The translations under genes and the position numbers were made by a program. A stretch of 64,000 bases of DNA from Rebecca billardiae RCC1528 (Eukaryota > Protista > Haptophyta): contig OZ251245.1 in NCBI GenBank assembly GCA_965240325.2, positions 434,001 through 498,000 on the forward strand, written 5' to 3'. Every line of letters begins with the position of its first letter. The stretch's first letter is position 1. Of the stretch, positions 1,224 to 55,562 are shown one piece after another. Below the pieces are notes generated by a model that was not told the DNA's origin, ran no database searches, and saw nothing but the letters and a program-made list of their open reading frames with translations.

Positions 1224-4200
1224 ATGGCGCCGAGCTGGGCGCCGTCGAGCAACGCGTACACGCCGAGCAAGGCGGCGCCGAGCGCGCTGCCCGGCACGCG
1301 GCGCGGGCCGCCGCCGACGGTGACGCGTCCCGACCTCTTCCCCAAGTCGGCCGACCAGGCGGACCTCCTGCGCACCACGAAGAAGGGCACGCTGTGGACG
1401 GACCCCGACTTCCCGCCGACCAACGCGTCGCTGTTCGGCAAGAGCGGCAAGGGCTCGAGCGGCATGGCGAAGGTGAGCGCGTGGCTCCGGCCAGATGAGT
1501 TCGCGCCGCTGCAGCCCGGCGAGACGCACCGCCTCGTGTACGGCGACGCCGCCGCGGGCGACGTCGTGCAGGGCGGGCTTGGGGATTGCTATCTGCTCGG
1601 CGCGCTCTCGACGGCGGCGGCGAGCCACGTGGACGGGTACTCGCGGCTGAAGCAGAACGTGCTCCCGTCGGACGGCGAGTCGTTCGCCGACCCGCCCGAG
1701 TGGCGCGAGCGCGGCTTCTTCACCTTCCGCTTCTACATCTTCGGCGAGTGGGTGCAGGTGAGCGTCGACACGCTGATTCCGTGCGGCGCGGACCGCCGCC
1801 CGGCGTTCGCGCGCTGCGTCGACCCGCGCGAGCTGTGGGTGCTGTACCTGGAGAAGGCGTACGCCAAGCTGCACGGCTCGTACGCGGCGATCGAGGGCGG
1901 CTCGCTCACCGCCGCGCTCGTCGACCTCACCGGCGGCTTTGCCGAGGAGATCGACCTTCGCTCGCCGAGCGCGCGCGCCGAGGTCGAATCTGGCCGGCTG
2001 TGGCAGCGGCTGCTGCGGTACCAGCGGCTGGGGTACCTGATGGGCTGCGCGGTGACGGTGCCGGGCGGCGAGACGCTCGAGCGCACGCCGGAGAACCTGA
2101 TGCAGAACCACGCGTACGGCATCCTGCTGCACTACGAGCAGCGCGCCACCAACGCCGCCGCCGACGAGGCGGCGCTCCGGCTCGTGAAGATCCGCAACCC
2201 GTGGGGCCAGGGCGAGTGGACGGGCGCGTGGGCGGACGAGGCGGCGGAGTGGCGGAGCGAGACGGGGCGGTACGCGATGCAGCAGCTCGACTACACGTTC
2301 GACGACGACGGCACCTTCTTCATGGAGTTCGCCGACTGCGCCGCGCACATCAACACCGTCTACGTGTGCAAGATCCTGCGAGACGCCGACTGGCACCGCG
2401 CCGAGCTGCACGACGAGTGGAGCACGGCGGCGGGCACGGCGGGCGGCTGCTTCAACTTCCCCACGTGGCGGGCGAACCCGCAGTGGGTGCTGCGCGTGAG
2501 CGAGCCGACGCACGCGCACTTCGTGCTGCTCCAGCCCGACTCGCGCGTCTCGCGCTCCGGCGGCGCCACGCAGTCGCACACCATCGGCATGTACATCATG
2601 CGCGGGCACGAGCGCTTCCTCCGGAGGGTGCTCGTGAATTCGGACGAGATCGATGGCGACGAGATCGTCGACTCGACGGACTTCGTGCTGCGGCGCGAGG
2701 TGTCGTGCAACACGCTGGACGAGGAGGGCGAGATGCCGCTCGTGCCGGGCGTGCCGTACGTGCTCGTGCCCTCGTCCTTCTACCCGCACAAGGATGGCAC
2801 GTTCAAGCTCATCATGTACACGCAGTCTGAGGTGGGCAGCCTGGAGCGCGTGCCGGCGCTGCTGCGGCAGCAGAAGCGCGGGCAGTGGATCGGCCGCTCG
2901 GCGGGCGGGCCGGAGGGCGGGCCCACGTGGAAGCTCAACCCGCAGTTCCTCATGCACGCGCGCGGCGCGTCCGACGACCGCCCTGCGCGGGTCTCCATCG
3001 TTCTCCACCGCCGAGACCCGGACTCCGAGGATCCGGAGGCGGGCGCCAAGGGGGTGAAGCGGAAGGGGCTGGCGGCGGCGGGCGGCGCGGGCGCGGGCTC
3101 CCCCGGCGGCGGGGGTGGCAGCATGTCGCGGCGCGGTGGCGGGAGCACGGGGCTCGCGGGCGCGGCGATGAGCTTTGTCGTCGCACACGCGGACCCGCAG
3201 CATGCGCACCTCGCCGACCGGCGCACGCTGCGCATCCCGAAGCGCGACGTGGTCGACCGCGCCGAGGCGTCGCTCAGCGCCGAGGTGGGCTCGGAGTTCG
3301 TGCTCAAGGAGGCATGCACCTTCGTGATCGTGCCGTCGACGGGGGAGCGCGGGCAGCAGGGCGAGTTCACACTTGACGTGTACTCAGACCAGCAGGTCGT
3401 GCTGGAGGACGTGAAGGAATGGACCGCCAAGACGATCCAGGGCGAGTGGCGCGGCCGCTCGGCGGGCGGCTGCCGCAACACGCAGGCGTGGGTCGCCAAC
3501 CCGATGTACTGGCTGAGCGCGCCCGAGCCCGGCGGCGGCGGCGGCGACCAGTGCGTGGTGCACGGCTTCATCTCGCAGCCGCCGCGTTCGCTCCGCGCCC
3601 CCGAGCCACACGACACGCCCGCGCACGCGCCCGCCGACGCCGAGTCCGGCCAGCCGCCCGGACTCGAGGGCATCGGCTTCTACGTCCTTCCGGACACGGA
3701 CGACCTCGGCACGACGCCGCCCGCCGTCAACTCGGGCTACTACACGGCCGAGGAGGTCGGCGCGGAGTTCAGCCTGAAAGCGGGTGCGCGCGGCGCGCCG
3801 CGCGCGGTCGGAGGGGCGCGAGGGCGCTCGGTCGAGTGCTCTGCGCCGCGCGGCGCGGAGCAGACCCGGCCGGCCGCGCTCACGGAGCCACCGCCCTCGG
3901 TCAATCGCGGCTGTCGCGCGCCGCGCGCGCGCGTGCTGCGCGCGCCCTCGGCCGACGCCCCGGCCGTGCCGTGCCGTCCGCACGCAGGCGCCAGGTACAT
4001 CCTCGTGCCCACGTCGTACCGCAAGGGCTTTGAGTCGGCGTTCAGCGTGCAGCTCTTCTCAGAGGAGCCGCTCGAGTGCAGGCGGCTCAAGCCCGCCGAG
4101 CACGGCAAGCTCGCCAACACGCTGTACGAAGAGTATGCGGCCGGCGTGCTGCAGAGGGTGCGCGCAGCCCAGCCGTGGCCGCCCGCCGCAGCCAGCGGCG

Positions 4201-4606
4201 CGGGCGCATGCGCATCCGCGCGGGGGGAGAGCGCCACCCGCCGCCGCGCGCGTGCGCGCCGCGCCGCCGACTGCGCGCCCATGCGCGCCCCGCGCGCCCA
4301 TCGCCCTCGGCCGCGCGCGCGGCGCAGGCGTGGGCGCGCTACCTGATCCGCCGCAGGCTTCGCGACCGCGAAGTGACCCGCGCCAAGGAGATCGCCGTCG
4401 CGTGGTTCTCCAAGCCGTACCGGCACTCGGAGGAGGGGTACAAGGACCTCAACTTTGCGATCAACGCGCTCGAGGCGGCGTTCATCCAGCTCACGGGCGA
4501 CCCGAGCGCGCACGGCCGCTTCTTCCCGCGCATGCGCGGAAGGATCAAGGAGCGCGGGCTCAAGATCGCGGACTACGACATGGTGCTGCCTGGGCCGCAG
4601 GAGTGA
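1224..4606 (+). CDS. Calpain-family cysteine protease (CysPc + repeated domain-III/C2-like modules + C-terminal IQ-like motif); exons 1224-3783, 3988-4157, 4328-4606
   Basis: WTDPDFPP; catalytic triad [23 protein letters not shown]; three domain-III starts (W..TAGGC..F..NPQW, W.GRSAGG...NPQF, W.GRSAGGC...NPMY). GT-AG introns 3784-3987 and 4158-4327 restore a continuous frame. Confidence 0.9.
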
Positions 4607-16923: not shown

Positions 16924-19215
16924 CACTTGCCGCCCGGCGCCCGCGGCCGTGCGCGTCAGGCTCGGCGAGCCCGCCGATACGAGCCCGGTGCCGCAGCGGC
17001 GAGACCCGGTTTTCAGTCTCAGCAGCCCCTGCATGAGCCTGCACGCGCTTGCATCTCGTCGGCCCTCTTACTAAGATGCGCGTGCGGCTGTATCAGGCCG
17101 TGTATATGAGCAGCGCTCCGCGAAACTGTGGCCTAGGCTCATTTAATGGCGGGCCGTACCGGTAGGTCCCCCCGGTCGACCACTGGGGACGCTCGGCCGA
17201 AAAAGGGTTCCTGGATGGCGCGGAGCGCGTGGGCGCCGCGCGCCAGATCCAACGCCGGCGTGGGCATCGCGCGAGGATTCCCGAGACGTGTTCTCGCCCG
17301 ATTCGCGATTGCTGCCCTCGTCGTCTCGCGTGTAGGTCGAACGGGGGCCAAAGTCGACGCGTTTGGAGGTACGCACGCGGCGCGTCGACACGATCGTGCG
17401 ACCTGGGGCGGTCCTCGCCTGACTTGCACGTCGAGCGCTCGCACGGGCCATAGTAGCAATCGCTGCGCACGACAACCACCTCGCGCGATCCACCGCCGCG
17501 CGTCAGGCTCGGTGCGGAAAGGCCCTCTTCACGAGGTGTCTCGCGGGCGGGAAGCGCCATCGGCATCGCACGCGACGCAAGATTTGGCGCGGCCTTCTGA
17601 ACTCGATCGCCGGAATCCGCGCACCGGACTGTCGCTCGCGGAGTGGCGGTCCCTCCTCAGCCGAAAGCCCACGTCCGGCGTGCATGGCGTCGAAGGTGAC
17701 CAGGGCGACGGAAGCGCAGCGCCAACGGCGTACGACGCGCAGCGGACGCACCTCCCGGGTCTGTCGCCGTGGTAGCAACCGCGTCTTCGCGAGTTGGCGA
17801 CCCTCGCCGCAGCGCGACACGGACAAGCCCGTGATGCCATCCGCAGAGAGATGCAACGTCGAGCGTGCAACATCGACGCGCCATCCTCGTCCATGGGGCA
17901 GGCGCTGCGGGACGAGGCGGACGTCGTCACGCCGGTGACAGATGCGCTGCGATTCGTGTGCCCGCGTGAGCAGCTCGTGCCCACTCTCGATCGCGAGTGG
18001 CACACGCTGTCGCTGTGCGCGCGCGCGCGCACAACCAACTGCTGCTCGTGCCGCCGAACACGCAGGAGCCAGACCTGTTGAAGAGGCGAAGAGCGACGAC
18101 CGCGTGAACGTCAACGCGCTCGTGCTCAGCGTGGCGGCCGTGTACGACGTCAACGCGACCTGCGCCGGGCCCATCATGCCCGGAGCGGACATCGGCAAGC
18201 ATCCTCGCGACGACCGCTCTCGGCTGTCGGCAGGAGGAAATGCACATCGGATCTACTCTGGCGGCTTCGTCGGGGGCGAGGCGCTCGATTACGCCATCGC
18301 GGTCGAGATGCGGCATATACAGCGCGTACCCGCGCTCGCGCGGAGCAACGGGCTACCCGCCCCGCCCCGTGTGCTGCACTTTCCCTCGTGGGTGCATGGG
18401 CCTTGCTGATGCGCACAGAGTACAGACGTGTACTCACGTCTCACGTGGGAGAACTTCAGGTGTCACTGGCCCTCGCCCTCGGACTGTCCGTCACCCACGG
18501 CCACGAGCAAATGTGGAAAGACGCGAACCCGCAGAGGAAACATTGCGACAGCACTGGCACGGCCCGCCGACCCCCCCCCGCCCGCCCGGGCGGGCGGCAG
18601 TCGTTAGTGTATGATACCGTATAGTCTTACTTTGCATGATTAGCGTCAGAGTAGTTATTATTAATTTATTTATATTCGTCGTCGTCGACGTCGTCAGGCC
18701 CGCCACGGGAAGTGCATGGGTACCAGGTCAAGGACGCCGTGAGCATGTTGGTGTCGGCAAGGGTGTCGCCTACTTGGTCGTCAGCAGCTGGTGGATCGGC
18801 GGACCTGACGATCCGGTCCGCGCGGGTGGCGCCAACTTGGTCAGCGGCTGGTCATGGCTGGTGGATGATGTTCACTGTCGTTATGTCGTAGCCTACTTCG
18901 GGTGGCAGCAGCTCAGGTGGATGATGCTGTGGTGGCCGTAGTTAGTAGCAGTAGCAGAGTAGTACGTTCTAGACGAGTAGTTATTATTGAACTCGCCGTT
19001 GCAGTCAGGACTGGTTCCGGTACTCTAAGTTAAGACTACTAGTTAACTTGTCGTGGGTGGCCAGATGGTCGTGTCGTCGTCATCTCGAATGCTGGGCCTG
19101 ATGAAGATAGTATATCTGCTAGTGATTGATATTCGTCTGGTGAACACAGCTTTAAACAATTTTAATTCGTGAGAAAGCTATAATAATGCAATTATTACTG
19201 CTAAAATATTAAGAT

Positions 19216-21491
19216 GCCTTGCGGCCTTGAGTCCCGGTGGGGCTGGTCGAACACAGCGCGTCTAGGACGCGACGGAGAAGCTTCCCACGGGGCCGGCAGA
19301 CCCGACGACGATGGGACGAGTTGGCCGTTCAGCGCTGAAGTGACGGTATCATCCGGTGGCGCGCCGCAGTCTGAGTCGCGCGTGCGATTAAGCCAGGCGC
19401 GCGGCAGCGCGGCACTTCTGCAAGGCCCACCTCGGCGCACGGCGAGGCGCGCGTCGATGCGGTCGTCGCTGCGCACAGCCGCTCGGGCACGACGGCACGG
19501 CAACGGCCCACCGGCTGTAGGCGCGGGGCGAGCGGCGCAGGCCGGCAGGGCACAACCGACTGCACGGCGTAGACTCCTCGGCTAAGCCGTCGCTGAGCAC
19601 GGCCCGTCGGGCACGACGTGGTACGAGCGGCTCGCGTCGGTGTGCATGTTGTGTTGTGCAGCTCGCGCCGGCGGGCACGCCGGTCCGCGATGGCGCCGCG
19701 AGCCGCGGGCGGCGCGGGTGACGGCTCGAAGGCCGCGCCTGTTGATGACGAGCCAGGGCCAGTAGTAGTAGTCACCGAGGGCACTAGTCGGCAGCGAGCG
19801 GGTGGCTTATGGTAGGCTTGTGGTACGAGCTTCTCCATGACGCTGTTCGTGCACGTCATCTGATGCGGTCGCGGCTGCTTGATCGCCGCCACGTGCCGCT
19901 GGATCTCCGCCAGATCGGCGCAGTTCCTCGCGACGCCGACGATGGCATCCGGCGCTGGGTTCGGCGGAGGCCCGCGGAGCTGTTCCTCGGTCGCGCACGT
20001 GTGTGCGAGCGCGAATGCCGGCAGCGTCAGCGGGGGCCTGGCGGCCTTGTCCCGGTGGGGCTGGTCGAACACAGCGCGTCTAGGACGCGACCGAGAAGCT
20101 TGCCAGGGCCGGCAGACCCGACGACGATGGGACGAATTGGTCGTTCAGCGCTGACTACCCGAGTACCCGTATACCGGTATCACCCGTATCATCCGGTGGC
20201 GCGCGCACGGCGCGCGCGCGGCGCAGCAGCGCGGCACCGCACCGCCACCGCGCTCTGCAAGGCCCATCGAGACGCCGGCGAGGCGCGCGTCGATGCAGTC
20301 GTCGCTGCGCACGAGACCCAGCTCCGACCCCCTTAAGCAGGAATACGGACAATGGACCCCGAAACGTTTTTTGATTAGGCACGCCTCGGGAATCGAGAAC
20401 GCATGTCGTTACCTTTTTGAGCGCGCATCATAGGGACGTCGTTGCGATTCCCACCTATTTGTTGACGCTTTTCTACGACCATCCGCCCCCAAGTCGAGGA
20501 ACCGCGACGCACGTCGCACGTGTGCTTTCGCCGCCGCTGCCGCGTGCGCTCGGCACACACGATTGAGTATGACGAACGAGCGCGCCGCTGCAGGAGGCGA
20601 AGGCCGCGCGCGACACGCAGAATGGCGCTCAACCGGCGTGGCTCGACGACGCTGCCGGCATTCGCGCTCGCACACACGTTGACGTGCGCGACCGAGGAAC
20701 AGCTCCGCGGGCCCGTCCGCCGAACCCAGCGCCGGATGCCATCGTCGGCGTCGCGAGGAACTGCGCCGATCTGGCGGAGATCCAGCGGCACGTGGCGGCG
20801 ATCAAGCAGCTGCGACCGCATCAGATGACGTGCACGAACAGCCTCATGGAGAAGCTCGTACCACAAGCCTACCATAAGCCACCCGCTCGCTGCCGCAGCC
20901 GACTAGTGCCCTCGGACTACTACTACTGGCCCTGGCTCGTCATCAACAGGCGCGGCCTTCGAGCCGTCACCCGCGCCGCCCGCGGCTCGCGGCGCCATCG
21001 CGGACCGGCGTGCCCGCCGGCGCGAGCTGCACAACACAACATGCACACCGACGCGAGCCGCTCGTACCACGTCGTGCCCGACGGGCCGTGCTCAGCGACG
21101 GCTTCAGCAGGAGTCTACGCCGTGCAGTCGGTTGTGCCCTGCCGGCCTGCGCCGCTCGCCCCGCGCCTACAGCCGGGCCACCCGCGGTGCGTGCCGTTGC
21201 CGTGCCGTCGTGCCCGAGCGGCCGTGCGCAGCGACGACCGCATCGACGCGCGCCTCGCCGTGCGCCTCGGTGGGCCTTGCAGAAGTGCCGCGCTATGCCG
21301 CGCCTCGGGCTTCAATCGCACGCGCGACTCAGACTGCGGCGCGCCACCGGATGATACCGTCACTTCAGCGCTGAACGGCCAACTCGTCCCATCGTCGTCG
21401 GGTCTGCCGGCCCTGGGAAGCTTCTCCGTCGCGTCCTAGACGCGCTGTGTTCGACCAGCCCCACCGGGACAAGGCCGCAAGGCCCCCGCTG
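19216..21491. repeat. Long inverted repeat (arms about 19216-20028 and 20648-21483) with an extra direct partial copy at about 20028-20312
   Basis: The roughly 820-bp arms are near-identical reverse complements. The head GTCCCGGTGGGGCTGGTCGAACACAGCGCGTCTAGG recurs at about 19231, about 20049 and (inverted) about 21470. Confidence 0.9.
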
Positions 21492-21713
21492 TTTTACCAT
21501 CTGTAGGCATACTGTAGTGTGCATGGAATCGCCATCGATCATCAGATTATTTGTTGCGTGATGTGTCCCAGACTACGGCCGAAGCAAATCAAGAAATAGA
21601 AGATAGGAGAAGGTAAAGTACTCAAGTGCTCACGGAGAGGATAATAAAGTGCTCACGCCTTCACGAGCTCGCCCCGCGCAGACGGAAATTGCGAGCGACC
21701 CCTGGAAGCAGAG

Positions 21714-24700
21714 ATGGAGGCTTCGGGACCGCCCGCCATGAAGCTCGATGACTCGCGCCAGGCGACGCGCTCCCCGTGGGCGGTGGCAGCCGTCACCATC
21801 GGCATGCTCCTCATCGCCACGGCGAGCAGCGCACCCCAGAAGATCAACACGACGGTGGCGGGCGGCGGCATCCTTGTATATGCTTCCGTCACGCTCGGTC
21901 TCCTTGCGGCCGCCTGGCCCGCCACCGGCTGCCGCACCCGAGCGCAGCGGCCGATTCGTTGCGCCAGCTGGTCCTACGGCCGGCTGGACGCGGCAGGCAC
22001 CGGCTGTGCACCAGCGCTGACGACTGCCACCATGCTCACGATGGCGCGCCTCGCCGCCGCCACTCCGGAAGAAAGCACTTCGATCAGCAGTTTCGCAGAA
22101 TGTATCTCCAACTCGGCAACATGCACTCAATTGTACGCGCGATCTGCCATTGCCGAGGGCCCTCCGTGTGCGCGCTGCTAGCATCGCAGCGGGCACCATG
22201 TCGTGTGTGCGGCCCCCACCCTCGTCTCTCCCCCCCCTCGCCCCCCGCGTGAGCTTCATCCAGTGGTGGCGGTGCTCCTCTATCCGACGTCACGGCTGAG
22301 GGTGCGGTGCTCGCGCGCGTGCACGATGCACAGGGACCTGGATGGCGGCACCATCATCCCGACCGAGATCGGCTCGGTGAGCAGCCTCACCTACATGTAC
22401 GCACGCGCATGCCCGCCAGCCGCCCATCGCTGTGGGCACTATGACATGCCCCCCCTTCCTGTGCGCGCCAGCTGCTGCACGATCTGACATCACTGCTGAG
22501 GGCGCGGTGCTCGCGCGCGTGCGCTACTGCCCGCGCGAGGCACAGGCGCGTGAAATGGACCTATCGCTCCCAAGGCAGTGGCACCATCCCGACCGAGGTG
22601 GGCTCGATGGGCAGCCTCGCCAAGATGTATGCGTGTGCGCCTGCCAGCCGCCCATCACTGCTGGCACCATGCCATCATGGGAGCCACCCCCGTGTGCGCG
22701 CCGGCGGCGGCGCGCCTTCTCGATCCGACGTCACTGCGGAGGGCGCGATGCTCGCACGCGTGCGCTGCCGCCCGCGCGACGCACAGGGAGCTGGAGTCCA
22801 ACAGTGTAACCGGCACCATCCCGACCGAGGTCGGCTCTATGGGCAGCCTCACCATGATGTACGCGCGCGCGCGCCGGCCAGCCGCCCATCCTCCATCGCT
22901 GCGGGCACCACCCATGCCATACGCGCCGCCCCCTTGTGCGCCCCAGTGGCGGCTCGCCTCCTCGATCCGACGTCAGTGCTGAGGGCGCGATGTTCGCGCG
23001 TGTGCGCTGCTGCCCGCGCGACGCACAGGAATCTGCATGAAAGCAGTTTAACCGGCACCATCCCGACAGAGTTCGGCTCGATGGGCAGCCTCACCTACTT
23101 GTATGCACGCACATGCCCGCCAGCCGCCCATCGCTGCTGGCACCATGCCATGCGCGCCGCCCCCTTGTGCGCGCCAGCGGCTGCGCGCCTCCTGGATCCG
23201 ACGCCACTGCTGAGGGCGCGATGCTCGCGCGTGTGCGCTGCTGCCCTCGCGATGCACAGGGACCTGTACCTTCTCAGGGCAAGCGGTACCATCCCAACCG
23301 AGGTCGGCTCTATGGGCAGCCTCACCTACATGTATGCACGCGCATGCCTGCGCGGGCACCATGCATGCCATGCGCGCCGCCCCGTTGTGCACGCCGGCGG
23401 CTGCGTGCCTACTCGATCCGACGTCACTGCTGAGGGCGCGATGCTCGCGCGCGTGCGCTGCTGCCCGCGCGACGCACAGGAAACTGATGGGCAGTTTTCA
23501 TACTTTTCACGGCACCATCCCGACCGAGGTCGGCTCGATGGGCAACCTCACCTACATGTATGCACGCGCATGCCCGCCAGCCGCCTCTCGCTGAGGGCAG
23601 CCGGGCACCATGCCATGCGTGCCGCCCCCTTGCCCCCTTGCGCGCGCCGGCGGCGGCGCGCCTCCTCGATCTGACCTCACTGCTGAGGGTGCGATGCTCG
23701 TGCGCATGCTGCTGCCCGTGCGACGCACAGGCTTCTGAGCAGAGCCAATTCGGGCGGCCCCATCCCGACCGAGATCGGCTCGATGGGCAGCCTCACCTAC
23801 ATGTACGCACGCGCATGCCCGCCAGCCGCCTCCGCTGCGGGTACCATGCCATGCGCGCCGCCACTTTGCCCCCTTGCGGCGCCGGCGGCGGAACGCCTCC
23901 TCGATCTGACGCCACTGCGGAGGGCGCGGTGCTTGCGCGCGTGCACTGCTGCCCGTGCAACGCACAGGCTCGTTTCGCCCTATTTAAGCGGCACCATCCC
24001 GACCGAGGTCGGCTCGATGGGCAGCCTCACCAAGATGTACGCGCGCGTGCGTCCGCCAGCCGCCCATCGCTGCGGGCACCATGCCATACGCGCCGCCCCC
24101 TTGCCCCCTTGCGCGCGCCAGCTGCTGCGCCCCTCCTCGATCCCACGTTGCGGCTGAGGGCGCCGTACTCGCGCGCGTGCGCTGCTGCCCGCGCGACGCA
24201 CAGGGACCTGGACCTGAACAGCCTAAGCGGCACCATCCCAACCGAGGTCGGCTCGATGGGCAGCCTCATCGCAATGTACGCGCGCGCGTGCTCGCCAGCC
24301 GCCTCTCGCTGCGGGCACCATGCTATGCGCGCCGCGCCCCCATGGGCATGTGCGCGCCAGCGGCGGCGCGCCTCGATCCGATGTCACCGCTGAGGGCGCC
24401 ATGTTGCGCAACGCACAGGGACGCTTCGTGGAGCGGTTTAAGCGGCGCCATCCCGACCGAGTTCGGCTCGATGAGCAGCCTCGCCAAGATGTACGCGAGC
24501 GTGCGCTAGCCAGCAGCCCATCGCTGAGGGCAACGCCCCCTTGAGCGCGCCAGCTGCTGCGCCCCTCCTCGATCCCACGTTGCGGCTGAGGGCGCCGTAC
24601 TCGCGCGCGTGCGCTGCTGCCCGCGCGACGCACAGGGACCTGGACCTGAACAGCCTAAGCGGCACCGTCCCGACCGAGGTGGGCTCTATGGGCAGCCTCG

Positions 24701-25210
24701 CCAGGATGTATGCGCGCGTGCGCCTGTCAGCTGCCCATCGCTGCTGGCACCACGCCAAGCGCGCCGCCCCCTTGTGTGCGCCAGCGGCGGCTCACCTGAC
24801 CTCCTCGATCCGACGTCACTGTGGATGGTGCGGTGCTCACGCATGTGCACTATGCCTGCGCGACGCTCAGGTTACTGAAATCAAACAGTCTAAGCGGCAC
24901 CATCCCGACCGAGGTCGGCTCTATGTCTGTGCTGCACGAAATGAATGTGGCCAACAACAAGATGTGGGGCGGTGTTCATGGCTTCCAAAACGTGCTTCCA
25001 TCGCATCTGCCTGAAGCACCGCCGCCGTCGCCACCTGCTCCCCCGCCGCTGCCCCCACCGCTGCAGGATTCTGGTCACCAACTTCAGCTCATGCAGATTA
25101 TTGCCTTGGCTGCTGGTGCATGCTGCTGCCTTGTGAGCACAATCGTGGCTGCAGTCTTCCTCCTGCCGCGCGTGATGGTAGTGGACAAGAAGGGCGGTTC
25201 CCTGCTGTGA
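21714..25210 (+). CDS. LRR receptor-like membrane protein, 13 exons, one LRR per exon: 21714-22132, 22334-22396, 22546-22626, 22787-22858, 23029-23100, 23260-23331, 23480-23557, 23731-23802, 23968-24036, 24204-24275, 24419-24490, 24636-24707, 24871-25210 (about 517 aa)
   Basis: Twelve repeats of a plant-type LRR (xLxxxxLSGTIPTEVGSMGSLxxM). All 11 internal exons are multiples of 3 and all introns are phase 2 GT-AG. Hydrophobic N-terminus, Cys-pair cap (CISNSATC), Pro-rich stalk, TM helix (IIALAAGACCCLVSTIVAAVFLL) and a short tail with no kinase. The start codon is uncertain. Confidence 0.85.
22133..24930 (+). repeat. Tandem array of 12 intron+exon units (about 215-250 bp period)
   Basis: Introns (143-201 nt) share GTA(C/T)GC..., CCAGCCGCCCATCGCTG, GGCACCATGCCATGCGCGCCGCCCC and CTCGATCCGACGTCACTGCTGAGGGCGCG...GCGACGCACAG. 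Confidence 0.95.
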
Positions 25211-27239
25211 GTGTCACTCGGCACAGTATCCCCTTACCGCAGGTTGCTTCTATACGAAGCAAAGATGGGTTCGCCCCCGCGGGTGCGTGCTCGGCGGGCA
25301 GGTGGACGCCGCGAGAGGGCGCGCGATGGCTGAGAGGCATCTTTGTGAGCATGTTCGTGGGCCACCCGAGCCTCATCGCCGCCGCCCTCCCCCTTCTCCG
25401 GTGCCACGGCGTCCAAACGGAGTGCCAAACAGTCGGTTCGAGCACGCCCAGAAGCAAAGTTTTGAGGGGTGCTCAGTTCGCCTCTGAGGTGCTCGTATCG
25501 CTGCGGTATGGTGCCGCACGCGGTACCGCATCAGGCGGGGTGAAGGACGTCACCCGCCGGTCGGCTCTCGGGCTGCCAGTCAGTGCCTGTGGTGCTCTGA
25601 CGCTGCTCTCCGAGCTCGAGATCCATCATGCGGCTTCCTGTGTGACGTCGGCAATGAGGAGGGTGTACTTGCGCACAGCGGGGCGCGCGCGTCGCGCATG
25701 TGATCGACACCGAAACAGACGAAGAAACATGACCGCCCATCCCGCCGAGCTCCTGGCTGACTTGCACTCGGCAATCACGCCGCGCGCGCGGCCTGCGGCT
25801 GCTGCGTGCGGCAAGCCGAGCCAAGCGTATCACGCGCAACTGGCAGGTGAGTGAGTTCACTAGCGCGACGAGTCAGGTGAACGCGCGCAGACCAGCGCGT
25901 GCAGTACGTACACCGCCTACAGCCATCTCGACCGATCGCCTACCTGCCTGAAGCAGCTGCAAGCGGCGTGCCGAGCCGGGTGTCGCGGGCACACAGTGCC
26001 AGCCTGGCGGGCACGACAGGCCCGTACGGCAGCTCGCGGCGCGCTGCCGCGGGATGCCATCGTGGAGGCATTGTAGCTGGAGGGACCAGTCTGGCGGCTG
26101 TCTACGGAGCAAAGTGAACTGCGGTAAGGGGATAGTGATTCCGGGCCCGACGCGACTACTATACAGTGACACCGCGTACGTATGGATGTACGCGGCTCTG
26201 GCTTCGGTTGGTCAACCCTGACTCTGCCAGAGACGGGCCCTCGTCTGCTAATTCTTTAGTCACGGCAATGAACTCATGCAATGATATGATGCTGATATGA
26301 AAAAATAACGGCGAAACACAGTGCAGGATTGGAATTTTCCGTGACGCTTCGGACGGTCCGCAGCTCGAGTCAGCGAATCCGGTCTCGGCCGGACAGTGGA
26401 ACTCGGGTGGAAGCCGCGACTTCGCGGCGGACGGAGCCTCAAACGAGCGGTGCCTCGGCTCGCGGCGCGATCTACTCGGCGAAGACCGACGAGGCTGCTC
26501 GCGGGCCCGACTATGCGTCGACGCGGGCTGGGGTCGTCTTCCGCGTGGCGCTGGGCAAGTTCCTCGCCGCCCTGACGGGTGCTCTCCTTTCGCCCTCACG
26601 GCGCGCGCGGTGCGTTTCGCGAGCTTCTTGCATGCACCGCCCGCGGTTGCGCCCGAGCCTGATGCTTCAGTCGACACGGCAGGTGGCTCGCGCAGGGTGG
26701 GATTGTGTGCGGGTGCCGCTGGCGGTGCGTCTCACCCTCCTGAAATTGTGTGGGAGGCTGTGACATTGCACGCGTACACCCCGCCACGCCCGCGGCCCGC
26801 CCGCGCAAACGCCGCGCCGCGCAGTTGTCTTTGACCTCGAGCGAGCCTGAGGCGTGGAGGCGACCGACGGCGGGGTGCGACTTGCCCACCGACCCGAGCC
26901 GCATCACCCAGCGCAGCCTCGCCCGCGACGACGCTTCGCCTGGCTGCCACTGCTCAGCCGCGTGCAAGGCGGGCTGGGCGACGTCCGTTTGCCGAGCGCG
27001 GCTGCAGCGCAGCACGCGAGAGGCTGGAGCGCCATGACGCGGATGGCGGAGCGGGCTTTGGGCTGGCTGGCATGAGCCGCCAGGCTGTACCGTCCGCGCA
27101 GATCGCGCTCGGCCCGGCCGCAGCCCTCCTGAGCGCGCGCCTCAGAGCTGAGACTGATCACGTGCACGCGCACAAGCCACACTGCCGTGGCTGTGTCGAG
27201 CAGCTGCGTGTGCTCGAGGCGCGGCGCTCGCACGGGCCA

Positions 27240-28000
27240 CGCGGGCGCAGCGGGTGCGCGTAGCTGGCGCACGCAGTGCCACGTCCTGCCGCGCCAGTTT
27301 GGCGGCCGTCCGCCCCCCCGAGCTCGAGTTCTGCGCGCTTTGCGACGGCGCGGCCGGCCGCGCCCATCTTCATGCTTGGGCACGCCAGCATGGCCGCCGC
27401 CGGGCCTGCTGCGCGCGCCGAAGCTGGAGGGCGGAGGAGGGCGCTGGGCTGCTCCTACGGCGTGCTGCAGCCCGGGCAGGCTTTTCCGCGGCGCGGCGAG
27501 GCCGTCGCGCCTGCTCGCCGCCGTCGAGTCGCCCGTGCTGAGTGACCGTCGGCCGCATGTGCTCGGCGGCACCGCAGGCAGGCGTCCCATACCAGTGTGC
27601 TCGAGCCGCTGCGCGCACCCAAGGCGAGCTGCTCGAGCGGGCTAGGTGGGCCCACGGAGTGCGCGCAGCTGGCGCACGCAGCCCCGCGTCATGGGGTGTC
27701 GGTTTGACGGTCGCCAGCCCCCGTGGGCTCGAGCTCTGTGCGCTTCACCACAGAGGTGCCGACGGCGCCCCGCGGCGCGCAACGGCGTGGCAGCATGGCC
27801 GCCGCCGGCGCCGCCGCACATGCCGCCGCTTACGGGCAGTCGAGAGCTTGGGGCAGCACCTACGGCATGCTGCAGCTCGGGCGGGCTCTGCCAGCCTGCT
27901 GTGGCGTGATCGCGCATTTTCCAGACCGTCGACTCGCCCGCGCTGCATATTTGTTTGCTGCGCGTGCTCGACGGCGCCGCTGCTGCCGCTACGGCCGCGC
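27240..28000 (+). repeat. Diverged tandem duplication, period about 405 bp
   Basis: Shared blocks AGCTGGCGCACGCAG, CAGCATGGCCGCCGCCGG (27387/27791) and CTACGGCRTGCTGCAGCYCGGGC (27455/27860). Confidence 0.55.
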
Positions 28001-29045
28001 GTTGCTGCGTCGCGAGCGAGCCCGATGCGAGCTGAACGGCGGCGTGCTCATCGCTGCTGGCGCAGATGGGCGCGTCATGGTGGCCACGCACGATGCTGAG
28101 TGCTCGCGCGTGCCAGACGAGGCGCGTGCTCGCGCTGTGGCTCAATGTCCGGCAGTGCGCGTGGCAGGCCGCAGCTGCTCGACAACAGAACCAGCGGGCA
28201 GTGATCGGGCTGCGCGCGCGCAGCTGATGGCGGCGAACGAGCGAGCCCGCACCGCCGCGCAAGGGCTGGGCGACTGGCGCCGAGGTGGCGCGCACGTCGT
28301 CCGCTGCCGTTGGCATCGCGGCGGACGCTTCAAGCTCGTTCGGCCGGCGTGTTTTCTCCGACGCCCACCTGCGAGCGCTGCCGGCACCGTGCTCGGGCGT
28401 CAGTATCGGTGGGCTCGAGCACGCGTGGTGAGGCGCTCGGAGCGGTCGACGGCCATGATCGGGCAGCGCACGGTGGGCGCAGGCCACGCGCACGCCAGCG
28501 CCCCGCGTGGCGTGGCTTCACGGGGCGCAGCCACCAGGAGACTGTGCTGCGACGAGCTCGGGCGCGCTCGGGCGCCGCTGCTCTGCATTTTCCCGAAAAA
28601 TCGGTTTTCGTGCCCTCGACCGGCGTTATGCCGCCGGGGTGGCCGCAGCTGCGCTCGGAGCAGCGCGCACGGGCACCGCCGTGTGCGCCCGCCCGCTTTC
28701 GCCGCCGCCGAGCTCGAGCACAGCGCTGCGCGGGGCTGCGTAATGCCAACGGCGCATGATTTTTTGCCCGCGCCGAGCGCGCGTCGGCGCGCGCAGCGCG
28801 CTCAGGTGTGGCCTGCTACCAAGGTCTGTGCCACGATTCGACGCGCCTATGGTGCGCCGAATTTAGGCGCACCGCTTCAGAATTGTCCGATGATTCGACT
28901 AGTGGTGCGGACAACTTAAAACGTCACCCTGAGCAGTTTTCCGGCACTGTGAAATTTATTGACGATGTATATATATATATTATAATGGGCAGGGTGAGTT
29001 TATTTATTATTGACGTTATGAGTCGTCACCACTCGTCGATCACAC

Positions 29046-30329
29046 TCACAACTCACAATCAGCATCAACGTCGTGCCACCGTGGCAGGTCGAAGATGTCG
29101 AGTGCATCCGCGGCTCTGCTGACTGACAGAGTGCCACTGGGACCGTCGTCACCAGCGTCACCATCAGAATAACTGCTCATCGTAGTCATGGCAAGGCCCC
29201 ATGCGGAGGCGCTCCACGTCGACGTGGGCCGCTCGGCACGCGCCGCCACCGCCGCTCTTTGCTTCATCCCACGCAGCGCGGCACTCGGGAACGTGTTCTC
29301 CTCCTCGCTATGCCGCAGCGCGACCACGGGCAGTGGCATGCGCTTGCCGCGCGCGTCGGCGAGCGCGCGCGCGGCGGTGCACGCCGCACCCACCACCGCG
29401 CTCGACGCCCGCGAGCCCGCTGGCCGCAAGTAGTACACGGCCGCGATGTCGGCGAGCGTGTATCCTACGTGCACCTCGTTGTACATGCTGCCGAACGGCA
29501 GCTGGGCGTCCGGGTACTCGCGCGCGGCCGCGCGGACAAAGGCGCGCTGCCGCCGCATCATGGCTTCCCAGTCCCTGTGGTGGCAGTTCGCATGCTTGGG
29601 CTTGACGAAGATGCGCGCGTATTCGCTCTCCCTGCTGCGCTGCTCGCTCAACGGCTCGGGCGCGGCGCTGCTCCTGGCGGCGCGGAGCGCGGCGCTTCTG
29701 TTGACGGCGCGGAGCGCGTCCAGCCGGGAGCGGGCATAGTCGGCGGGGCCGGTCCGGGCGCACCTCCGCGACGGCCAGTGGCCGCGGCCGTACGAATCGT
29801 TGGGGTACGCCGCGCGCCGCTGCTTCGATTTCAGCTCTTTGAAGACCCAGCCAAAGTGCATCGGCGACGGCTCGTGATTCGTGTACGCGCTCGTGGGTAG
29901 CGAGGAGTGCAGGAGGCAGCCGTGGACCCAACCGGGCCTGCGGTCGGCAAGAGCACGTACGCAGGCCCGCACGTACGCATGGAGGGCTGACGGCTCGTCG
30001 AACGCTGCCTCGTTGCCTGGCCGCGCGTGCAACGCCTCCTGCGAGCACCTGAACATGTGCACAACCACGCCATTGCGGCGCGTTGCGCTGAAGCGCCGGC
30101 GGAGTTTCGCGCGCGCGACTGCTGCCTGCGCAAAGCTCTGGGCACAATGAGCCGTGCTGTTTTCGCGCGCGCCGGCTGCTTGCACGATGCTCTGGGCACA
30201 GTGAGCCGTGCTGTTCTCCGCGCTGGTGGTGCTCACTGCCGGTGCACGGCCGATCACCAGCAGGACGAGCGCACTGCCGAGCACCACCACGAAGGTCAAG
30301 CCCGCCGCGCACGACGCGCGCTCGTGCAT
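29046..30329 (-). CDS. Signal-anchored/secreted protein with a putative ADP-ribosyltransferase-like domain
   Basis: 427-aa ORF with protein-like composition, an N-terminal hydrophobic helix, an internal duplication (ENSTAHCAQS x2) and motifs VVVHMF / GCLL / GWVF / AYP / YNEV / IAAVYY. The function is inferred. Confidence 0.7.
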   Translation of the reverse strand: MHERASCAAGLTFVVVLGSALVLLVIGRAPAVSTTSAENSTAHCAQSIVQAAGARENSTAHCAQSFAQAAVARAKLRRRFSATRRNGVVVHMFRCSQEALHARPGNEAAFDEPSALHAYVRACVRALADRRPGWVHGCLLHSSLPTSAYTNHEPSPMHFGWVFKELKSKQRRAAYPNDSYGRGHWPSRRCARTGPADYARSRLDALRAVNRSAALRAARSSAAPEPLSEQRSRESEYARIFVKPKHANCHHRDWEAMMRRQRAFVRAAAREYPDAQLPFGSMYNEVHVGYTLADIAAVYYLRPAGSRASSAVVGAACTAARALADARGKRMPLPVVALRHSEEENTFPSAALRGMKQRAAVAARAERPTSTWSASAWGLAMTTMSSYSDGDAGDDGPSGTLSVSRAADALDIFDLPRWHDVDADCEL

Positions 30330-31145
30330 CCCGCCGAGCGGCCGAGGCGGTAGTTTTCATGAGTCCGGTTCCGTACAGTTTGGGGCGATGGCCGACGCGA
30401 CGGGAGTGGTGGGTTTGGCAGTCCGCGGTGGTTATCGCGTTATGACTGCCGCGTCGCTGCTCCGCCGCCGTCCGTGCCCCTCCCCGCTAGGTGGGCGTAT
30501 ACCTGGCCGGACGCGGGTTCGGCGCTCGCAGCGGCATCGCCGGAGTGACCGGACGGTGACGAGATGTGAGTCGGAAGCAGCTCGCCTTTGCGGCGCGGGT
30601 ACCAAGCGGAAAGTGAGCGTACCTGCAGGCGGGCCGACCCTCGGCGTGACAGGCGCACCTTCGGGGCCGGTCAGGGCAGCCCACGTCGTGCAGCCGACCG
30701 CTTCCGCCGCGACTGCCCCCCGGCGCACCCTGCCCCGGCCGACGCCTGAGCACAGCGGCCCCGCCCGGGCCCGGGGCCCCCGGGCGGCAGGCCGCGGCGG
30801 CGCCGGCACACTCACGGACAGCCAGCGGCGCTCCTCCGCCTCCTTCGCTCCCCGTTCCTCGTTGTCCCCCCCTGGCGTGGTGCGCGTGCATCACGCTCGA
30901 ACTCTCACGATGCTGCTTCGGCGTCCTTCTGCGGCGGCATCCGACGGTCGTGCGCACTGCGAGGCGGAGCGCGAGGTGCTGGGCACTGCCGTCCGTCGTG
31001 CTCCCTCCTCCTCATGGCCCACTGCTTTACTCGAGGGGAACGCTCAGCGCCTTCTGCTTCTCTCATCCGCTCGTGCGCGACCACGCTTGTGCTGGGTGTC
31101 CTTCTGAGGCGTCCGGTGGCCGGGCGCACATCGGGGGGCGCACAT

Positions 31146-50992: not shown

Positions 50993-53030
50993 TCAGCGCA
51001 CAAACGCCCACTGCGACACGCGCTCGATCGCGTAGCACGAGGCCGCGGTCACGAGCGCGGTGGAGACGAGGCTCTCGCGCAGCGCGGGCGGGAGCTCGAC
51101 GAGCTCGAGCATCTCGTTCAGCGGCGCCAGCCAGCCGCTCGCCATCCCCACCCCGCCGCCCGCCATCAGCGTGAGCAGCGCAAACAGCGGCCGGTTCGAG
51201 CGCAGCGACTCCATGAACGGGTGCCCCGTGTAGTTCACGGCGAACGTCGTCGCCTGCCGGGCGGCGGCGGCGCGCGGGCAGCGCGCGGCGCAGCGTGAGC
51301 ACGCGCGCGGGGCCCACACCCCTCTCCCGCGCGCCCCCGCTCCCCGCGCGCGCCCTCCCCCGCGCCCACCTGCGCGAGCAGCAGCACGAGGTAGACCACG
51401 CTGTTGAGCACGCCCGGCTCAAACTTGCCCTCGGGGTCGCGCTCGCGGCCGGCTGGCTCGTGCGCGCTCGCCTGCGCGGGCGGGGAGGGCAGGGGGCGGC
51501 GTGTGTGTGTGTGTGTGCATGTGTGTACGTGTGTACGTGTGTAAGTGCGCGTGTGCGTGTGCGTGCGTGTGCGCGAGTGTGGCGGGGGGCGGCGCGGCGC
51601 GGCGCGCACCTCCGCCACCAGTGAGACGAGCGCCAGCAGGTGGCAGCCAAACTGGCCCGCCACCGACACGGCCACGTACGGCGACAGCACCGAGGTGGGC
51701 GGCTGGCGGGGGGAGAGGGTGGGCAGCGGCTTGGCGCGCGAGATGAAGAGGAAGGCGACGGCGTTGAGCATCGCGGCCACCGTCACCTGCGTGTCCCCGT
51801 TCTTGATCCCGTCGTGGTACAGCACAGAGAGGCCGTAGCTGCGCACACACGCGCACACACGCGCACACACGCACACACGCGCACACGCGCACACGCGCAC
51901 ACGCGCATGCGCGCATGCGCACACACGCCACAGGGCGCCGCGCGCGCGCGCGGGAGGCGGTGCGGGGCGCGTGGGCGCACAGCGGGAGCGGAGCGCGCGG
52001 CGCTCGCGCGGCGGGCGCGTGGCGCGCACGCGGAGAGCAGGCAGTTGAGCGCGAGGATCTTGAACATCTGGATGGTCGTCACCAGCGTCGCGCGCCCCTG
52101 CATGAGCACCTGCAGCGCGGCGGAGATGGAGGCGGAGCGCGAGGTGAAGGGCGAGGCGAACGAGGCGTCGCCCGGCCGCACCATCTGCACCTCCGCGTCG
52201 AGGTACGGCTGGGGCGGCTGCTGCGGCGGCGGCTGCGCGCCGAGGCCCGCGCCGCCCGCCCGCTGCGCCGCCGCGCCCGCGGCCGACCCGCCGCCCGCCG
52301 CCGCGTCCGCCGCCGCCGTCTCCTGGATGAGTGCGGCCAGCTCGCCGCCCGCGCCGCCCGCGCCGCCCGCGCCGAGCGCGAGGGTGTCCGTGTGCGTGCC
52401 GTGCGCGTCCACGTTGACGGGCGGGTTGATCACGGCGATGCCGATCGCCGCCTCCTTGAGCGCGCCCACGTCGTTGGTGCCGTCGCCGAGCATCGCTGTC
52501 GTCGCGCCCGTCGCGTTCAGCGCCGCGAGCACCGCGGCCTTCTGCTCGGGCGAGACGCGCGCGAACACGCGCACGCGCGAGAGCACGGCGCCCGCCTGCG
52601 CGGCGCTGCGCCCGTCGAGGAGGGCGGGGAGGAGGCGGCCGGGGACGCAGAGGTCCCACGCGCGCGCGAGCTCGGCGACCGCGCGCGCGCCCTCCTCCGA
52701 GCGCGGGTCCGTGAGTAGAGCCGACGGCGACGTCGCCGCCGCCGCCGCCTCGGCCGCCTCCGCCTCGGCCGCGGCCAAGCGCTCGCCCGAGCGGCGGCGC
52801 GCGCGCGCGCCCGCCCCCTTCTTGCCGCCCGCCTTGCCGCCCTTCGGGCCCTTCGCGGCGGAGGCGGCGGCGGACGCGTCGGCCGCGGCCTGCTCCTCCG
52901 CCGCCGCCGCCGCGCGCCGCAGCTGCGCCAGGTACTGCGCGCGCTCGGCCGCGGAGTGCATCGGCCGCCAGTGCAGGCCGCGCGGCGGCGGCGGCGGCGG
53001 CGCGGCGGCCGCGTCGGCCGCGCCCGCCTC

Positions 53031-53063
<33 letters not shown>

Positions 53064-55044
53064 GCCCCCCGCGTCGGTCGGCGGCGGCGCGGGCTGCCCG
53101 GCTGCCTGCACCGCCGCCTCCGCCTCCGCCCCGCCCCCTCCGAGCGCCAGCTCGCTCAGCTCCAGCAGCGGCTTGGTCGCGAGGCCGGCGTCCACCGCCG
53201 CCTGGCACGCGGTGTAGGGCGTGTCGCCCGTGATCATCACGAGCTCGTGGCGCGAGCGCCGCAGGTGCGCGAGGACCGAGGCGGTGTCGGGCTTGAGCGG
53301 GCACGCGAGCACGAGCAGCCCCCGGAACGTCAGCCCCGACTCCGCCGCGTCCCGCCCTGCCAGCTTCGCCTCGGCCGCGCTCACGCCGGGCAGCGCCTTG
53401 TCGCCGAGGGCGAGCACGCGCGCGCCGCGCCGCGCAAACCACGCGAAGAGGTCGTCGTACCACTCGGGCTTGGCGGCGAAGCGCGAGGCCATCGCCTCGG
53501 GCGCGCCCTTCGCGAGCACGCGCAGCTGCGAGTGCGAGCGCCGCTCCGCGCGCTCGCCGCCCGCGTCCGCCCACTCGACGGTGGCGAGCACAGACATGCG
53601 GCGCAGCGCCGAGCGGAACGGGAAGCGGTGGTGGATGCGCACGGACGCGGGGGGCTGCGCGGCGAGCGCGTGGCGGTGCGCGCGGTGCACGCCGGCGTTG
53701 ACGAGCACGTCGGGCCGGCTGAACGCCCACCCCACCGACGAGAGCGCCGCGCGCTCCATCGGGTCCCCCAGCAGCCGCGTGCCGACGCACACGATCCCGT
53801 GGCACGCCGCCAGGCACACCGCCACGTCCAGCTCGAGGTCGGAGGGGCGGAGCAGCGCGGGGCGCAGGGAGGCGGCGGCGGCGGCGGCGCCGGCGCCGTC
53901 GGGCGGCGCGGCCTCGGCGCGCTGCGCCGCCGCCGCCGCCGGCCCGGGCGAGACGCCGAGCACGGTGAGCCTGTCCGTGGTGAGTGTGCCCGTCTTGTCG
54001 AAGCAGAGCACCTTCGCCTTGCCCGCCATCGGGATGCGGAAGGGCTCGGTGCAGTACACGCCGGCGAGGTGGAGGGCGAGGAGGGAGGTGTTCACCGCGA
54101 GCGAGAGCTCCATCGGCAGCTCGGGCGGCACCACCGACGTGAGGATCATCGTGCAGTGCAGCAGCAGCCGGTGGCGGTCGCGCGACTCGTCCGCCCAGCC
54201 GGTCGCGAGCACGTGCCCGGCCGCGGCGAGCGCGCACGCGAGCAGGCACAGGATGTAGACGAGGACCTCGGTGTTGTTGGCGGAGACGGGCTCGCGCGAG
54301 AAGAGGATGGTGCGGAGCAGCTTGCCCTGCGTCGTCGCGAACCCCGTGCGCAGCACGTACCCCACCGCGCCGCCGTCGGGCGGCTGCAGCGCGCGCGGCT
54401 GCGCGCCCGCCGAGTGCTGCACGACCGACGTGCCGGCGCACAGCACGTGCGTGCGGTCGCGCGCGAGGCAGAGCGGCTCGGAGGCGCGCTCGGGCGGGGG
54501 CGCCTCCTTGAGCTGCGGCACGGACTCGCCGGTGAGCATCGCCTCGTTCGCCACCGCCGAGCCGTGCACGAGCAGCACGTCCGCGACGAGCGGCGCGTCG
54601 TCCGACGGCCCGCGGCACACCGAGACCAAATCTCCCGGCACGAGATCGGCCGAGGAGAGCGGCTGCCACCGGCCGGCGCGGTGGCAGAGGACGGGCGCGG
54701 GGCGCGGCGCGAGCAGCCGCAGGTCGGCGAGCGTGCGCATCCGCGAGCTCACCACCGTCCCCTCGAACAGCGCGAGCATCGCCAGCGTGAACAGCGAGTA
54801 GTACCAGTAGTCGTCGAGCGACCAGAGCCCCACGCAGAAGAGCTGGAACACAAAGAAGGGCGCGAGCAGCTGCTGGGCGTAGAGCGCCCAGAAGGAGGGC
54901 TCGGGGATGGAGAAGGCGTTCGGGCCGAACGCCGCCTGCCGGCGCACCGCCTCCTCCTCCGACTCCACGCCGCCCCACGCGCCGTACGAGCCCAGCGGCT
55001 CGTCGATCGGGTAGCGCGAGCGCTCGAACCGCGCACCGCACCGC

Positions 55045-55081
<37 letters not shown>

Positions 55082-55562
55082 CCGAGGGCGGCGGCGGCGG
55101 CGGCGGCGGCGGCACGTGCACGTACTTGCGGCGCTGCCAGTAGAAGTGCGCGACGCCCTCGCCCGCCGCGTCGCCCGGATCGGCGCCCTCGGCCGCCGAG
55201 CTCATGCGCAGCAGCCGGCAGAGCGTGCGCCGCCCGCCCGCGCCCGGCGCCACGACCTTCACCGCGGTCGCGCGGCGCACGTCGCGCACGGCGCGGAAGT
55301 GCAGCGCGACGCGCAGCTCGACGGACCAGTACGTCGCGAGCACCGACAGCCCGTGCAGCCCGACGAGCACCGGGAACACGTACGGCATCACCTCGTACGC
55401 GTGCGGCGCGCTAACGAGCGCCCACAGCGCGAGCGCGTACGCGCACGCGAACGGGAGGACGTCGGGGCGCAGCGCGGCGGCGCGCGGGGCGAGGAGGGTG
55501 ATCGAGCGCGGCTCCTCCTCGTCCGACGCGCTCGCGGACGCGCCCGCCGTTGGCGTCGCCAT
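50993..55562 (-). CDS. ATP13A1: P5A-type ATPase (Spf1/ATP13A1); exons 52030-55562, 51610-51838, 51370-51471, 50993-51253
   Basis: TGES, PPELPMELSLAVN (P5A signature), DKTGTLT, KGAPE, MITGD, GDGTNDVGALK, GDASFASPFTS, VNYTGHPFMESL; three frame-consistent introns. Confidence 0.95.

Follow-up and report, generated by a model that had tools for sequence, protein, structure and literature searches.

In a 64-kb stretch of contig OZ251245.1 from the haptophyte Rebecca billardiae RCC1528 (hereafter the window, with all coordinates given as positions within it), we identified an apparently intact gene for a predicted membrane-anchored leucine-rich repeat (LRR) protein that is built from tandem units of one intron and one exon. 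The gene occupies positions 21714–25210 of the forward strand and comprises 13 exons. A splice-site scan with the recurring donor (A/T)T^GTAYGC and the recurring acceptor C(A/T)CAG^G (the caret marks the exon boundary) yielded 12 donor–acceptor pairs, and the exons joined from the ATG at 21714 form an uninterrupted frame of 517 codons running to position 25210, corresponding to a predicted product of 517 amino acids (aa).

Exon 1 (21714–22132; 419 nucleotides, nt) contains the start codon and ends in phase 2. It is followed by an array of 12 intron-plus-exon units of ~231 nt each (22133–24870). The 12 introns (22133–22333, 22397–22545, 22627–22786, 22859–23028, 23101–23259, 23332–23479, 23558–23730, 23803–23967, 24037–24203, 24276–24418, 24491–24635, and 24708–24870) are 143–201 nt long, all of the GT-AG type and all in phase 2; they start with GTAYGC and end with (G/T)C(A/T)CAG. 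Between them lie 11 internal exons, each encoding one LRR: exons 2–5 (22334–22396, 22546–22626, 22787–22858, and 23029–23100), exons 6–9 (23260–23331, 23480–23557, 23731–23802, and 23968–24036), and exons 10–12 (24204–24275, 24419–24490, and 24636–24707), all on the forward strand and with lengths, in order, of 63, 81, 72, 72, 72, 78, 72, 69, 72, 72, and 72 nt. The last exon (24871–25210) encodes LRR 12 (24871–24942) and the remainder of the protein up to the stop codon. The last two bases of an exon are AT, or TT in the case of exons 1 and 5, and a G opens each following exon. Met or Leu would thus occupy the hydrophobic repeat position 4 whichever exons were joined, even in combinations that are not native. 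An earlier note on this DNA had proposed the same model, with 11 symmetric phase 2-2 internal exons of these lengths and 12 mutually homologous introns; the splice scan and translation reproduced the exons exactly, and the introns proved to be uniformly GT-AG, in phase 2 and alignable to one another. The exon phases also bear out its proposal that removing, duplicating, or swapping any internal exon would leave the reading frame intact.

The sequence evidence that this is a real coding gene is strong. All 24 splice sites are canonical and conform to an extended consensus, and there is no in-frame stop across the 517 codons. Four exons carry indels relative to the 72-nt length, and all exon lengths are still multiples of three (probability by chance ~0.012, ~1 in 81). 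The 89 codons in the AT-richer variable patches that open the LRR exons (described below) contain no stop (probability by chance ~0.02), and out-of-frame TAA triplets are common there. GC content at third codon positions (GC3) is 0.95 in the conserved exon halves, similar to that of the neighboring long open reading frames (ORFs; 0.94–0.97). The exon 1 frame is open; its frame-0 GC3 is 0.73–0.87 in the initial 360 nt and 0.53 in the final 57 nt. The window has a GC content of ~70%, and a stretch of clearly lower GC content, intergenic- or promoter-like, lies directly 5′ of the start codon (21480–21710) and lends support to 21714 as the site of the first ATG. The possibility of a minus-strand gene was considered and rejected because no GT-AG pattern is present on that strand. 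Likewise rejected was an alternative acceptor just 5′ of the conserved scaffold half of the repeat, given that the AG is found in only some units and its use would break both the frame and the repeat.

Owing to this GC richness, long stop-free ORFs of 374 aa (22550–23674, forward strand) and 277 aa (23560–24393, forward strand) traverse several introns, and because introns 5 and 8, at 159 and 165 nt, have lengths divisible by three, the frame would survive if they were retained. A gene caller working from ORFs would mis-annotate the locus at 21714–25210.

The predicted product consists, in order, of two hydrophobic segments, a Cys pair, 12 LRRs, a cap-like stretch, a Pro-rich stalk, a membrane helix, and a tail. 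Hydropathy analysis places the N-terminal hydrophobic segments at residues 22–40 (21777–21833) and 48–70 (21855–21923), with an Arg-rich stretch after the second one, and the Cys pair (C130 and C137; 22101–22124) is located just ahead of the first repeat. The cap-like stretch after LRR 12 lacks Cys and is followed by the Pro-rich stalk (25010–25063) and by a C-terminal hydrophobic helix (25097–25165; hydropathy peak of 2.42), which spans residues 481–499, was extended by eye to residue 503 and contains three consecutive Cys; a basic, cytoplasmic-type tail of 14 residues precedes the stop codon. The stalk, helix, basic tail, and Cys pair make a cell-surface location of the LRR domain plausible. 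A Pfam scan of the two non-LRR exons detected no kinase or any other domain, in line with the previous description of a kinase-less product with a Cys cap, a Pro stalk and a transmembrane helix, of which the Cys pair, the stalk and the helix are all present. Single exons and read-through ORFs, which were scanned piecewise, gave no Pfam LRR match.

The repeats themselves can be assigned to a class. The array has a 24-residue period, with 8 of the 12 units being exactly 24 residues (72 nt) long and the others 21, 27, 26, and 23 residues, and the consensus is LxxLxLxxNxL(S/T)GxIPxxLGxLxxL, in which the G, I, P, G, and L vary little or not at all; roughly half of the units have a degenerate LxLxxN half. 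A profile made from the alignment of the 12 exon translations and run against solved structures (PDB) matched only the ectodomains of plant LRR receptor kinases, with the best match to ERL2 (E = 1.4e-13), followed by RGFR/At4g26540, ERL1, FLS2, PSKR1, PEPR1, SERKs, and BRI1. Thus, the repeats belong to the plant-specific (PS) LRR class, and this is class membership rather than orthology because the same motif is widespread in bacterial- or protist-looking LRR proteins (origin not verified). A phmmer search with the last exon returned thousands of proteins with a GTIPTE-type LRR motif, which aligned only to the LRR part; the five matches that were inspected looked bacterial-type, their origin being likewise not verified.

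The array is repetitive at the nucleotide level across exons and introns alike. Tandem Repeats Finder reported a period of 231 nt with 11.1 copies and 73% matches. Introns 2–12 are 76–94% identical to one another over their full length, and intron 1 is 67–73% identical to them, mainly through its 3′ part. A conserved exon 26-mer occurs 11 times and an intron 26-mer 9 times within the gene, with no occurrence of either in shuffled sequences or elsewhere in the window. Because the 12 units align across both intron and exon, and the period found by Tandem Repeats Finder equals 231 nt, the units share an origin, and the array was built by repeated copying of a 231-nt intron-plus-exon unit. The mutual homology of the introns is thus simply a legacy of the tandem duplication of a one-repeat unit. 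Introner-like mobile introns, considered as another source of similar introns, were rejected because the intron consensus is confined to the array within the window. No transposon remnant was seen in the introns of this gene. Intron identity declines weakly with the distance between units (rho = −0.23, p = 0.10).

Exchange between the units has continued after their duplication. The non-adjacent units 9 and 11 share an identical tract of 122 nt; no other exact repeat in the array is longer than 44 nt. One copy of the tract (24113–24234) covers the 3′ 91 nt of intron 9 and the first 31 nt of exon 10; the other (24545–24666) takes in the 3′ portion of intron 11 and 31 nt at the start of exon 12. 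The tract includes the entire variable patch, and its flanks differ on both sides, with a deletion in intron 11 and unlike exon bases downstream. In a Sawyer-type permutation test, the 81 successive polymorphic sites that agree in this tract gave p ≤ 0.0005, a value that remains significant after Bonferroni correction for 55 pairs; the other unit pairs show only marginal mosaic signals. A recent intragenic gene conversion has carried a variable patch between units 9 and 11, and, extending across intron and exon, the tract is direct evidence that the homologous introns mediate germline exchange of repeat cassettes.

The divergence between units is distributed very unevenly. Introns differ pairwise by 0.18, and none of 95 sliding intron windows of 24 columns exceeds 0.26. 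The scaffold block GxIPxxxGxxxxL differs by 0.13, with 0.04 at codon position 2 and 0.19 at codon position 3, the latter close to the intron level; this pattern marks the scaffold as being under purifying selection. By comparison, the pairwise difference reaches 0.48–0.53 across codons 5–12 and ~0.5 in codons 2–3, and the ratio of variable-patch to intron divergence is 3.6 after Jukes-Cantor correction. In solved plant LRR receptors, positions 2, 3, 5, 7, and 8 of LxxLxLxxN are solvent-exposed residues of the concave face. The same concave-face positions are given for the brown alga Ectocarpus (PMC3341825). Codons 2–3 and 5–12 are therefore predicted to form a concave, ligand-binding face under selection for difference, and a rapidly evolving binding surface is most likely what the variable positions represent.

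The variable patches also stand apart in composition. These patches, the first 15–33 nt of each LRR exon (22334–24942), have a GC content of 0.54 and a GC3 of 0.65, compared with a GC3 of 0.95 in the remainder of these exons and an intron GC content of 0.73. For the Leu at repeat position 11, the codon is in every case of the form NTA (TTA, CTA, or GTA), a rare choice in so GC-rich a genome. The AT-richer composition could reflect rapid turnover or purine/AT-rich signals for exon definition.

Composition likewise enters into the possibility that the array is a neutral young duplication or a decaying gene, that is, a functionless tandem expansion in which the patches mark relaxed constraint or a mutation hot spot. 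Such an origin would fit the GC3 of the whole gene (0.79), which is below that of the neighboring housekeeping-type ORFs (0.94–0.97), the still lower GC3 of the patches, the degeneracy of several repeats, and the failure to find a database homolog of the N-terminal exon. Neutral sequence, however, should diverge like the introns (0.18) and not by ~0.5, the second positions of the scaffold bear the mark of purifying selection, and the frame, all 24 splice sites, and the stop-free state have been kept despite the indels. We therefore regard a neutral or decaying locus as very improbable.

The sequence shows the structure of the gene, its origin by duplication, a conversion tract, and a contrast in rate between patch and intron; on this basis, the explanation that we favor, and consider reasonably probable, is that of a germline LRR receptor-like gene that was expanded and reshaped by recombination between homologous phase-2 introns under selection for diversity of the binding face. 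Under this scenario, the LRR domain would have grown through repeated unequal recombination between these introns, each event adding or removing one 231-nt unit and hence one 24-residue repeat without breaking the frame, and gene conversion would still be moving segments between units. Selection would keep the structural half of the repeat, GxIPxxxGxxxxL, nearly invariant, and would favor or preserve differences at repeat positions 2–3 and 5–12, which form the ligand-binding beta-strand face in solved plant LRR receptors. Constitutive splicing would then produce a single product of 517 aa, presumably exposed at the cell surface and potentially recognizing variable ligands, such as those of microbes, viruses, or mating and cell-contact partners.

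Several observations weigh against this explanation, at least in its simplest form. The splicing pattern is predicted from the DNA sequence, and no ortholog or paralog sequence emerged from the ORF, exon 26-mer, and metagenome searches. The canonical Asn at position 9 is absent from 6 of the 12 repeats and four repeats are of non-canonical length, so the solenoid may be irregular in places. A cytosolic LRR domain would be compatible with the pair of N-terminal hydrophobic segments and the Arg-rich stretch behind them. Furthermore, all codon positions of the patch are highly diverged (0.53, 0.48, and 0.42, with third positions at 0.42–0.45), and patch length varies from 15 to 33 nt across units, which complicates a simple reading in terms of positive selection. 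Divergence at third positions is not predicted by selection on amino acids alone; together with the variation in length, it points to turnover by small indels or to old patches that were preserved while their flanks were homogenized.

The second of these possibilities amounts to concerted evolution with protected patches: the units would be old, conversion and unequal crossing-over would homogenize introns and scaffold, events that overwrite a patch would usually be purged, and the patches would accordingly be older rather than faster evolving. The near-equal divergence of the three patch codon positions is what old sequence would show, conversion is demonstrably active in the array, and the central units are somewhat more alike than the edge units, which goes along with the weak fall of identity with distance. 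On the other hand, the sole clear conversion tract includes a variable patch, so the patches are not mechanically shielded, the mosaic signals beyond the pair of units 9 and 11 are only marginal, and the match between scaffold third positions (0.19) and introns (0.18) would be predicted by a single shared age as well. On balance, we consider protected old patches a serious but clearly less probable account than expansion by intron recombination combined with selection on the binding face.

The symmetric exon phases also raise the prospect of combinatorial alternative splicing, in which one gene would give rise to many isoforms that differ in how many repeats, or which ones, they contain and thus to a receptor repertoire, as has been proposed for the brown-algal ROCO genes. 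The phase 2-2 exons and the Met/Leu junctions fully permit it, and there are precedents: Ectocarpus ROCO genes produce up to nine LRR-exon splice variants (PMC11378527), and in Medicago SERK3, exon 3, where the first LRR is encoded, is skipped in one transcript (PMC3061892). Yet, the strong and nearly identical splice sites on all 12 introns favor constitutive use, and the permissive phase is a by-product of unit duplication rather than evidence of regulated skipping. RNAalifold, applied to 11 related sequences and thus with little power, detected no covariation-supported pairing elements in the introns (covariation term of +0.18, most pairs invariant); with the same reservation about power, nothing supports Dscam-type docking or selector RNA elements, and a conserved intron RNA structure was rejected as a candidate for lack of covariation. 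We judge combinatorial splicing to be unlikely here, and return to germline recombination between the introns as the preferred source of diversity.

This preference meets only in part the suggestion that the locus is a cassette system diversified by intron-mediated recombination and/or alternative splicing. The 122-nt tract documents recombination between homologous units, and the variation falls on the predicted binding face, but flanking cassettes were not found in the 64 kb. When all six frames were scanned for the G-x-(I/V/L)-P signature and DNA pattern scans were added, neither strand of the window yielded a further LRR segment or any orphan, intronic, antisense, or inactivated LRR exon; this search was limited to the window, within which the search for the intron consensus and orphan cassettes suggested in the earlier note yielded nothing outside the gene. 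That the gene belongs to a repertoire of surface recognition receptors, with diversity generated on short timescales by changes in copy number and patch exchange across strains and/or by in-frame exon skipping, and used against viruses or bacteria, is accordingly a rather doubtful extension of the favored explanation.

Searches beyond the window returned little. The search with the exon 1 ORF gave no Pfam match and no database homolog, exact look-ups of two ORFs in the gene region gave no match, and the 374-aa read-through ORF, which contains three in-frame repeats, had two weak matches and no self match. The exon 26-mer had no matches in metagenomes. A protein-based metagenome scan recovered six loci on JGI contigs with a GC content of 42%, which are contiguous, intron-less LRR genes with 72-nt repeat spacing (for example, L006:2637–3700) and a similar GSIPTEVGSM-type motif. 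Thus, this type of repeat sequence exists also without the structure of one exon per repeat; these loci are uninformative about how the exons of the Rebecca gene are arranged.

In the immediate vicinity of the gene, the ten longest flanking ORFs (17000–21700 and 25200–30400; within ~5 kb) had no Pfam match, and among them there was no adjacent kinase or obvious signaling partner; many of these ORFs may be artifacts of the GC richness. Farther away, an uninterrupted ORF of 1040 aa on the forward strand (1224–4346) encodes a calpain (Peptidase_C2, E = 2.5e-71, plus Calpain_III). An identical calpain is encoded on a 4.85-kb Logan contig from run ERR14847151, and a cluster-mate of at least 90% identity is found on another contig. 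On the reverse strand, an ORF of 1259 aa (51783–55562) contains the domains of a P5A-type ATPase (E1-E2_ATPase, Hydrolase, and P5A-ATPase 2TM hairpin), and the exact sequence of this protein was not found in the protein collection searched.

The earlier note overstated the novelty of the arrangement, given that arrays of one LRR per exon in the same phase are already on record for brown algae, Tetrahymena, plant SERKs, and the gonadotropin receptors of vertebrates, the LRR exons of the last being in phase 2 as well (PMC11378527). What is new here is the contrast in rate between patch and intron, the 122-nt conversion tract, and an intron position unlike that of the Ectocarpus ROCO genes.

A parallel at the level of duplicated units is found in Tetrahymena, where thousands of LRR genes consist of tandem 90-bp exons, have introns of which more than 98% are in phase 2, contain repeat units of exon plus intron within the gene, and form large, fast-evolving families (PMC6564038). 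As in those genes, the exon-plus-intron units of the Rebecca gene are visible at the nucleotide level, the introns are biased to phase 2, and the junction codon is shared between exons. However, the exons are ~72 bp here compared with 90 bp in Tetrahymena, the LRR class is different, the Tetrahymena genes are associated with the REP retrotransposon, and the Tetrahymena genome is AT-rich.

With plant receptor-like proteins (RLPs) and LRR receptor kinases, such as SERK, the ERECTA family, FLS2, and BRI1, the predicted protein shares the LxxLxLxxNxLSGxIPxxxGxxxxL repeat class, and in its overall plan, with an LRR domain, a membrane helix, and a short tail, it corresponds to the kinase-less RLPs. 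In contrast to the plant LRR receptors, it has no kinase and no recognizable plant-type N- or C-terminal caps (only one Cys pair), and it carries two N-terminal hydrophobic segments. The similarity is confined to the repeats, with no detectable orthology, and is shared by bacterial and protist LRR proteins.

The variable lymphocyte receptors (VLRs) of agnathans combine an LRR solenoid that has a variable concave face with a stalk and a membrane anchor. Their germline gene is incomplete, and somatic assembly fills it with cassettes from libraries that flank it. The predicted product resembles VLRs in its variable concave face, stalk, and membrane anchor. The analogy with VLR-type assembly did not hold up, however: the gene is complete in the germline, and neither flanking LRR cassettes nor further copies of the intron are present in the 64 kb.

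The brown-algal ROCO genes, in Ectocarpus and others, offer a further comparison. Each LRR in these genes is encoded by a 72-bp phase-2 exon, and exon shuffling, positive selection on the concave face, and LRR-exon splice variants have been described (PMC3341825; PMC11378527). The gene analyzed here has in common with them the 24-residue LRR per 72-nt exon, the phase-2 introns, the GxIPxxL motif, the concave-face variation, and the duplication or shuffling of exons. It differs in lacking a ROC-COR GTPase, in having a stalk, a helix, and a tail, and in its two non-LRR exons without a Pfam match. Its introns are short and mutually homologous, unlike those of Ectocarpus ROCO genes, and the intronic, antisense, and inactivated LRR exons carried by the Ectocarpus loci have no counterpart in the 64 kb. 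The intron position differs as well: the Ectocarpus type I exon, GxxPxxLxxxxxLxxLxLxxNxLx, starts at the G of GxxP, whereas the exon here starts at repeat position 5, beginning with xLxLxxN and ending two residues past the scaffold Leu. Given this difference, the one-LRR-per-exon layout probably arose independently of the brown-algal ROCO genes, and the locus would add a likely independent origin of this architecture.

In conclusion, this locus offers a clean and compact example of how an LRR binding domain can grow and diversify, with homologous introns of the same phase as substrates for recombination and with exons that each combine a nearly frozen scaffold at one end with a hypervariable patch at the other. 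If the family proved to be large and polymorphic among strains, it would be a candidate for a poorly understood layer of recognition in alga–virus or alga–bacteria interactions. Should the gene indeed belong to a receptor repertoire, it would represent an independently evolved, membrane-anchored counterpart of the brown-algal ROCO system in a GC-rich marine alga.

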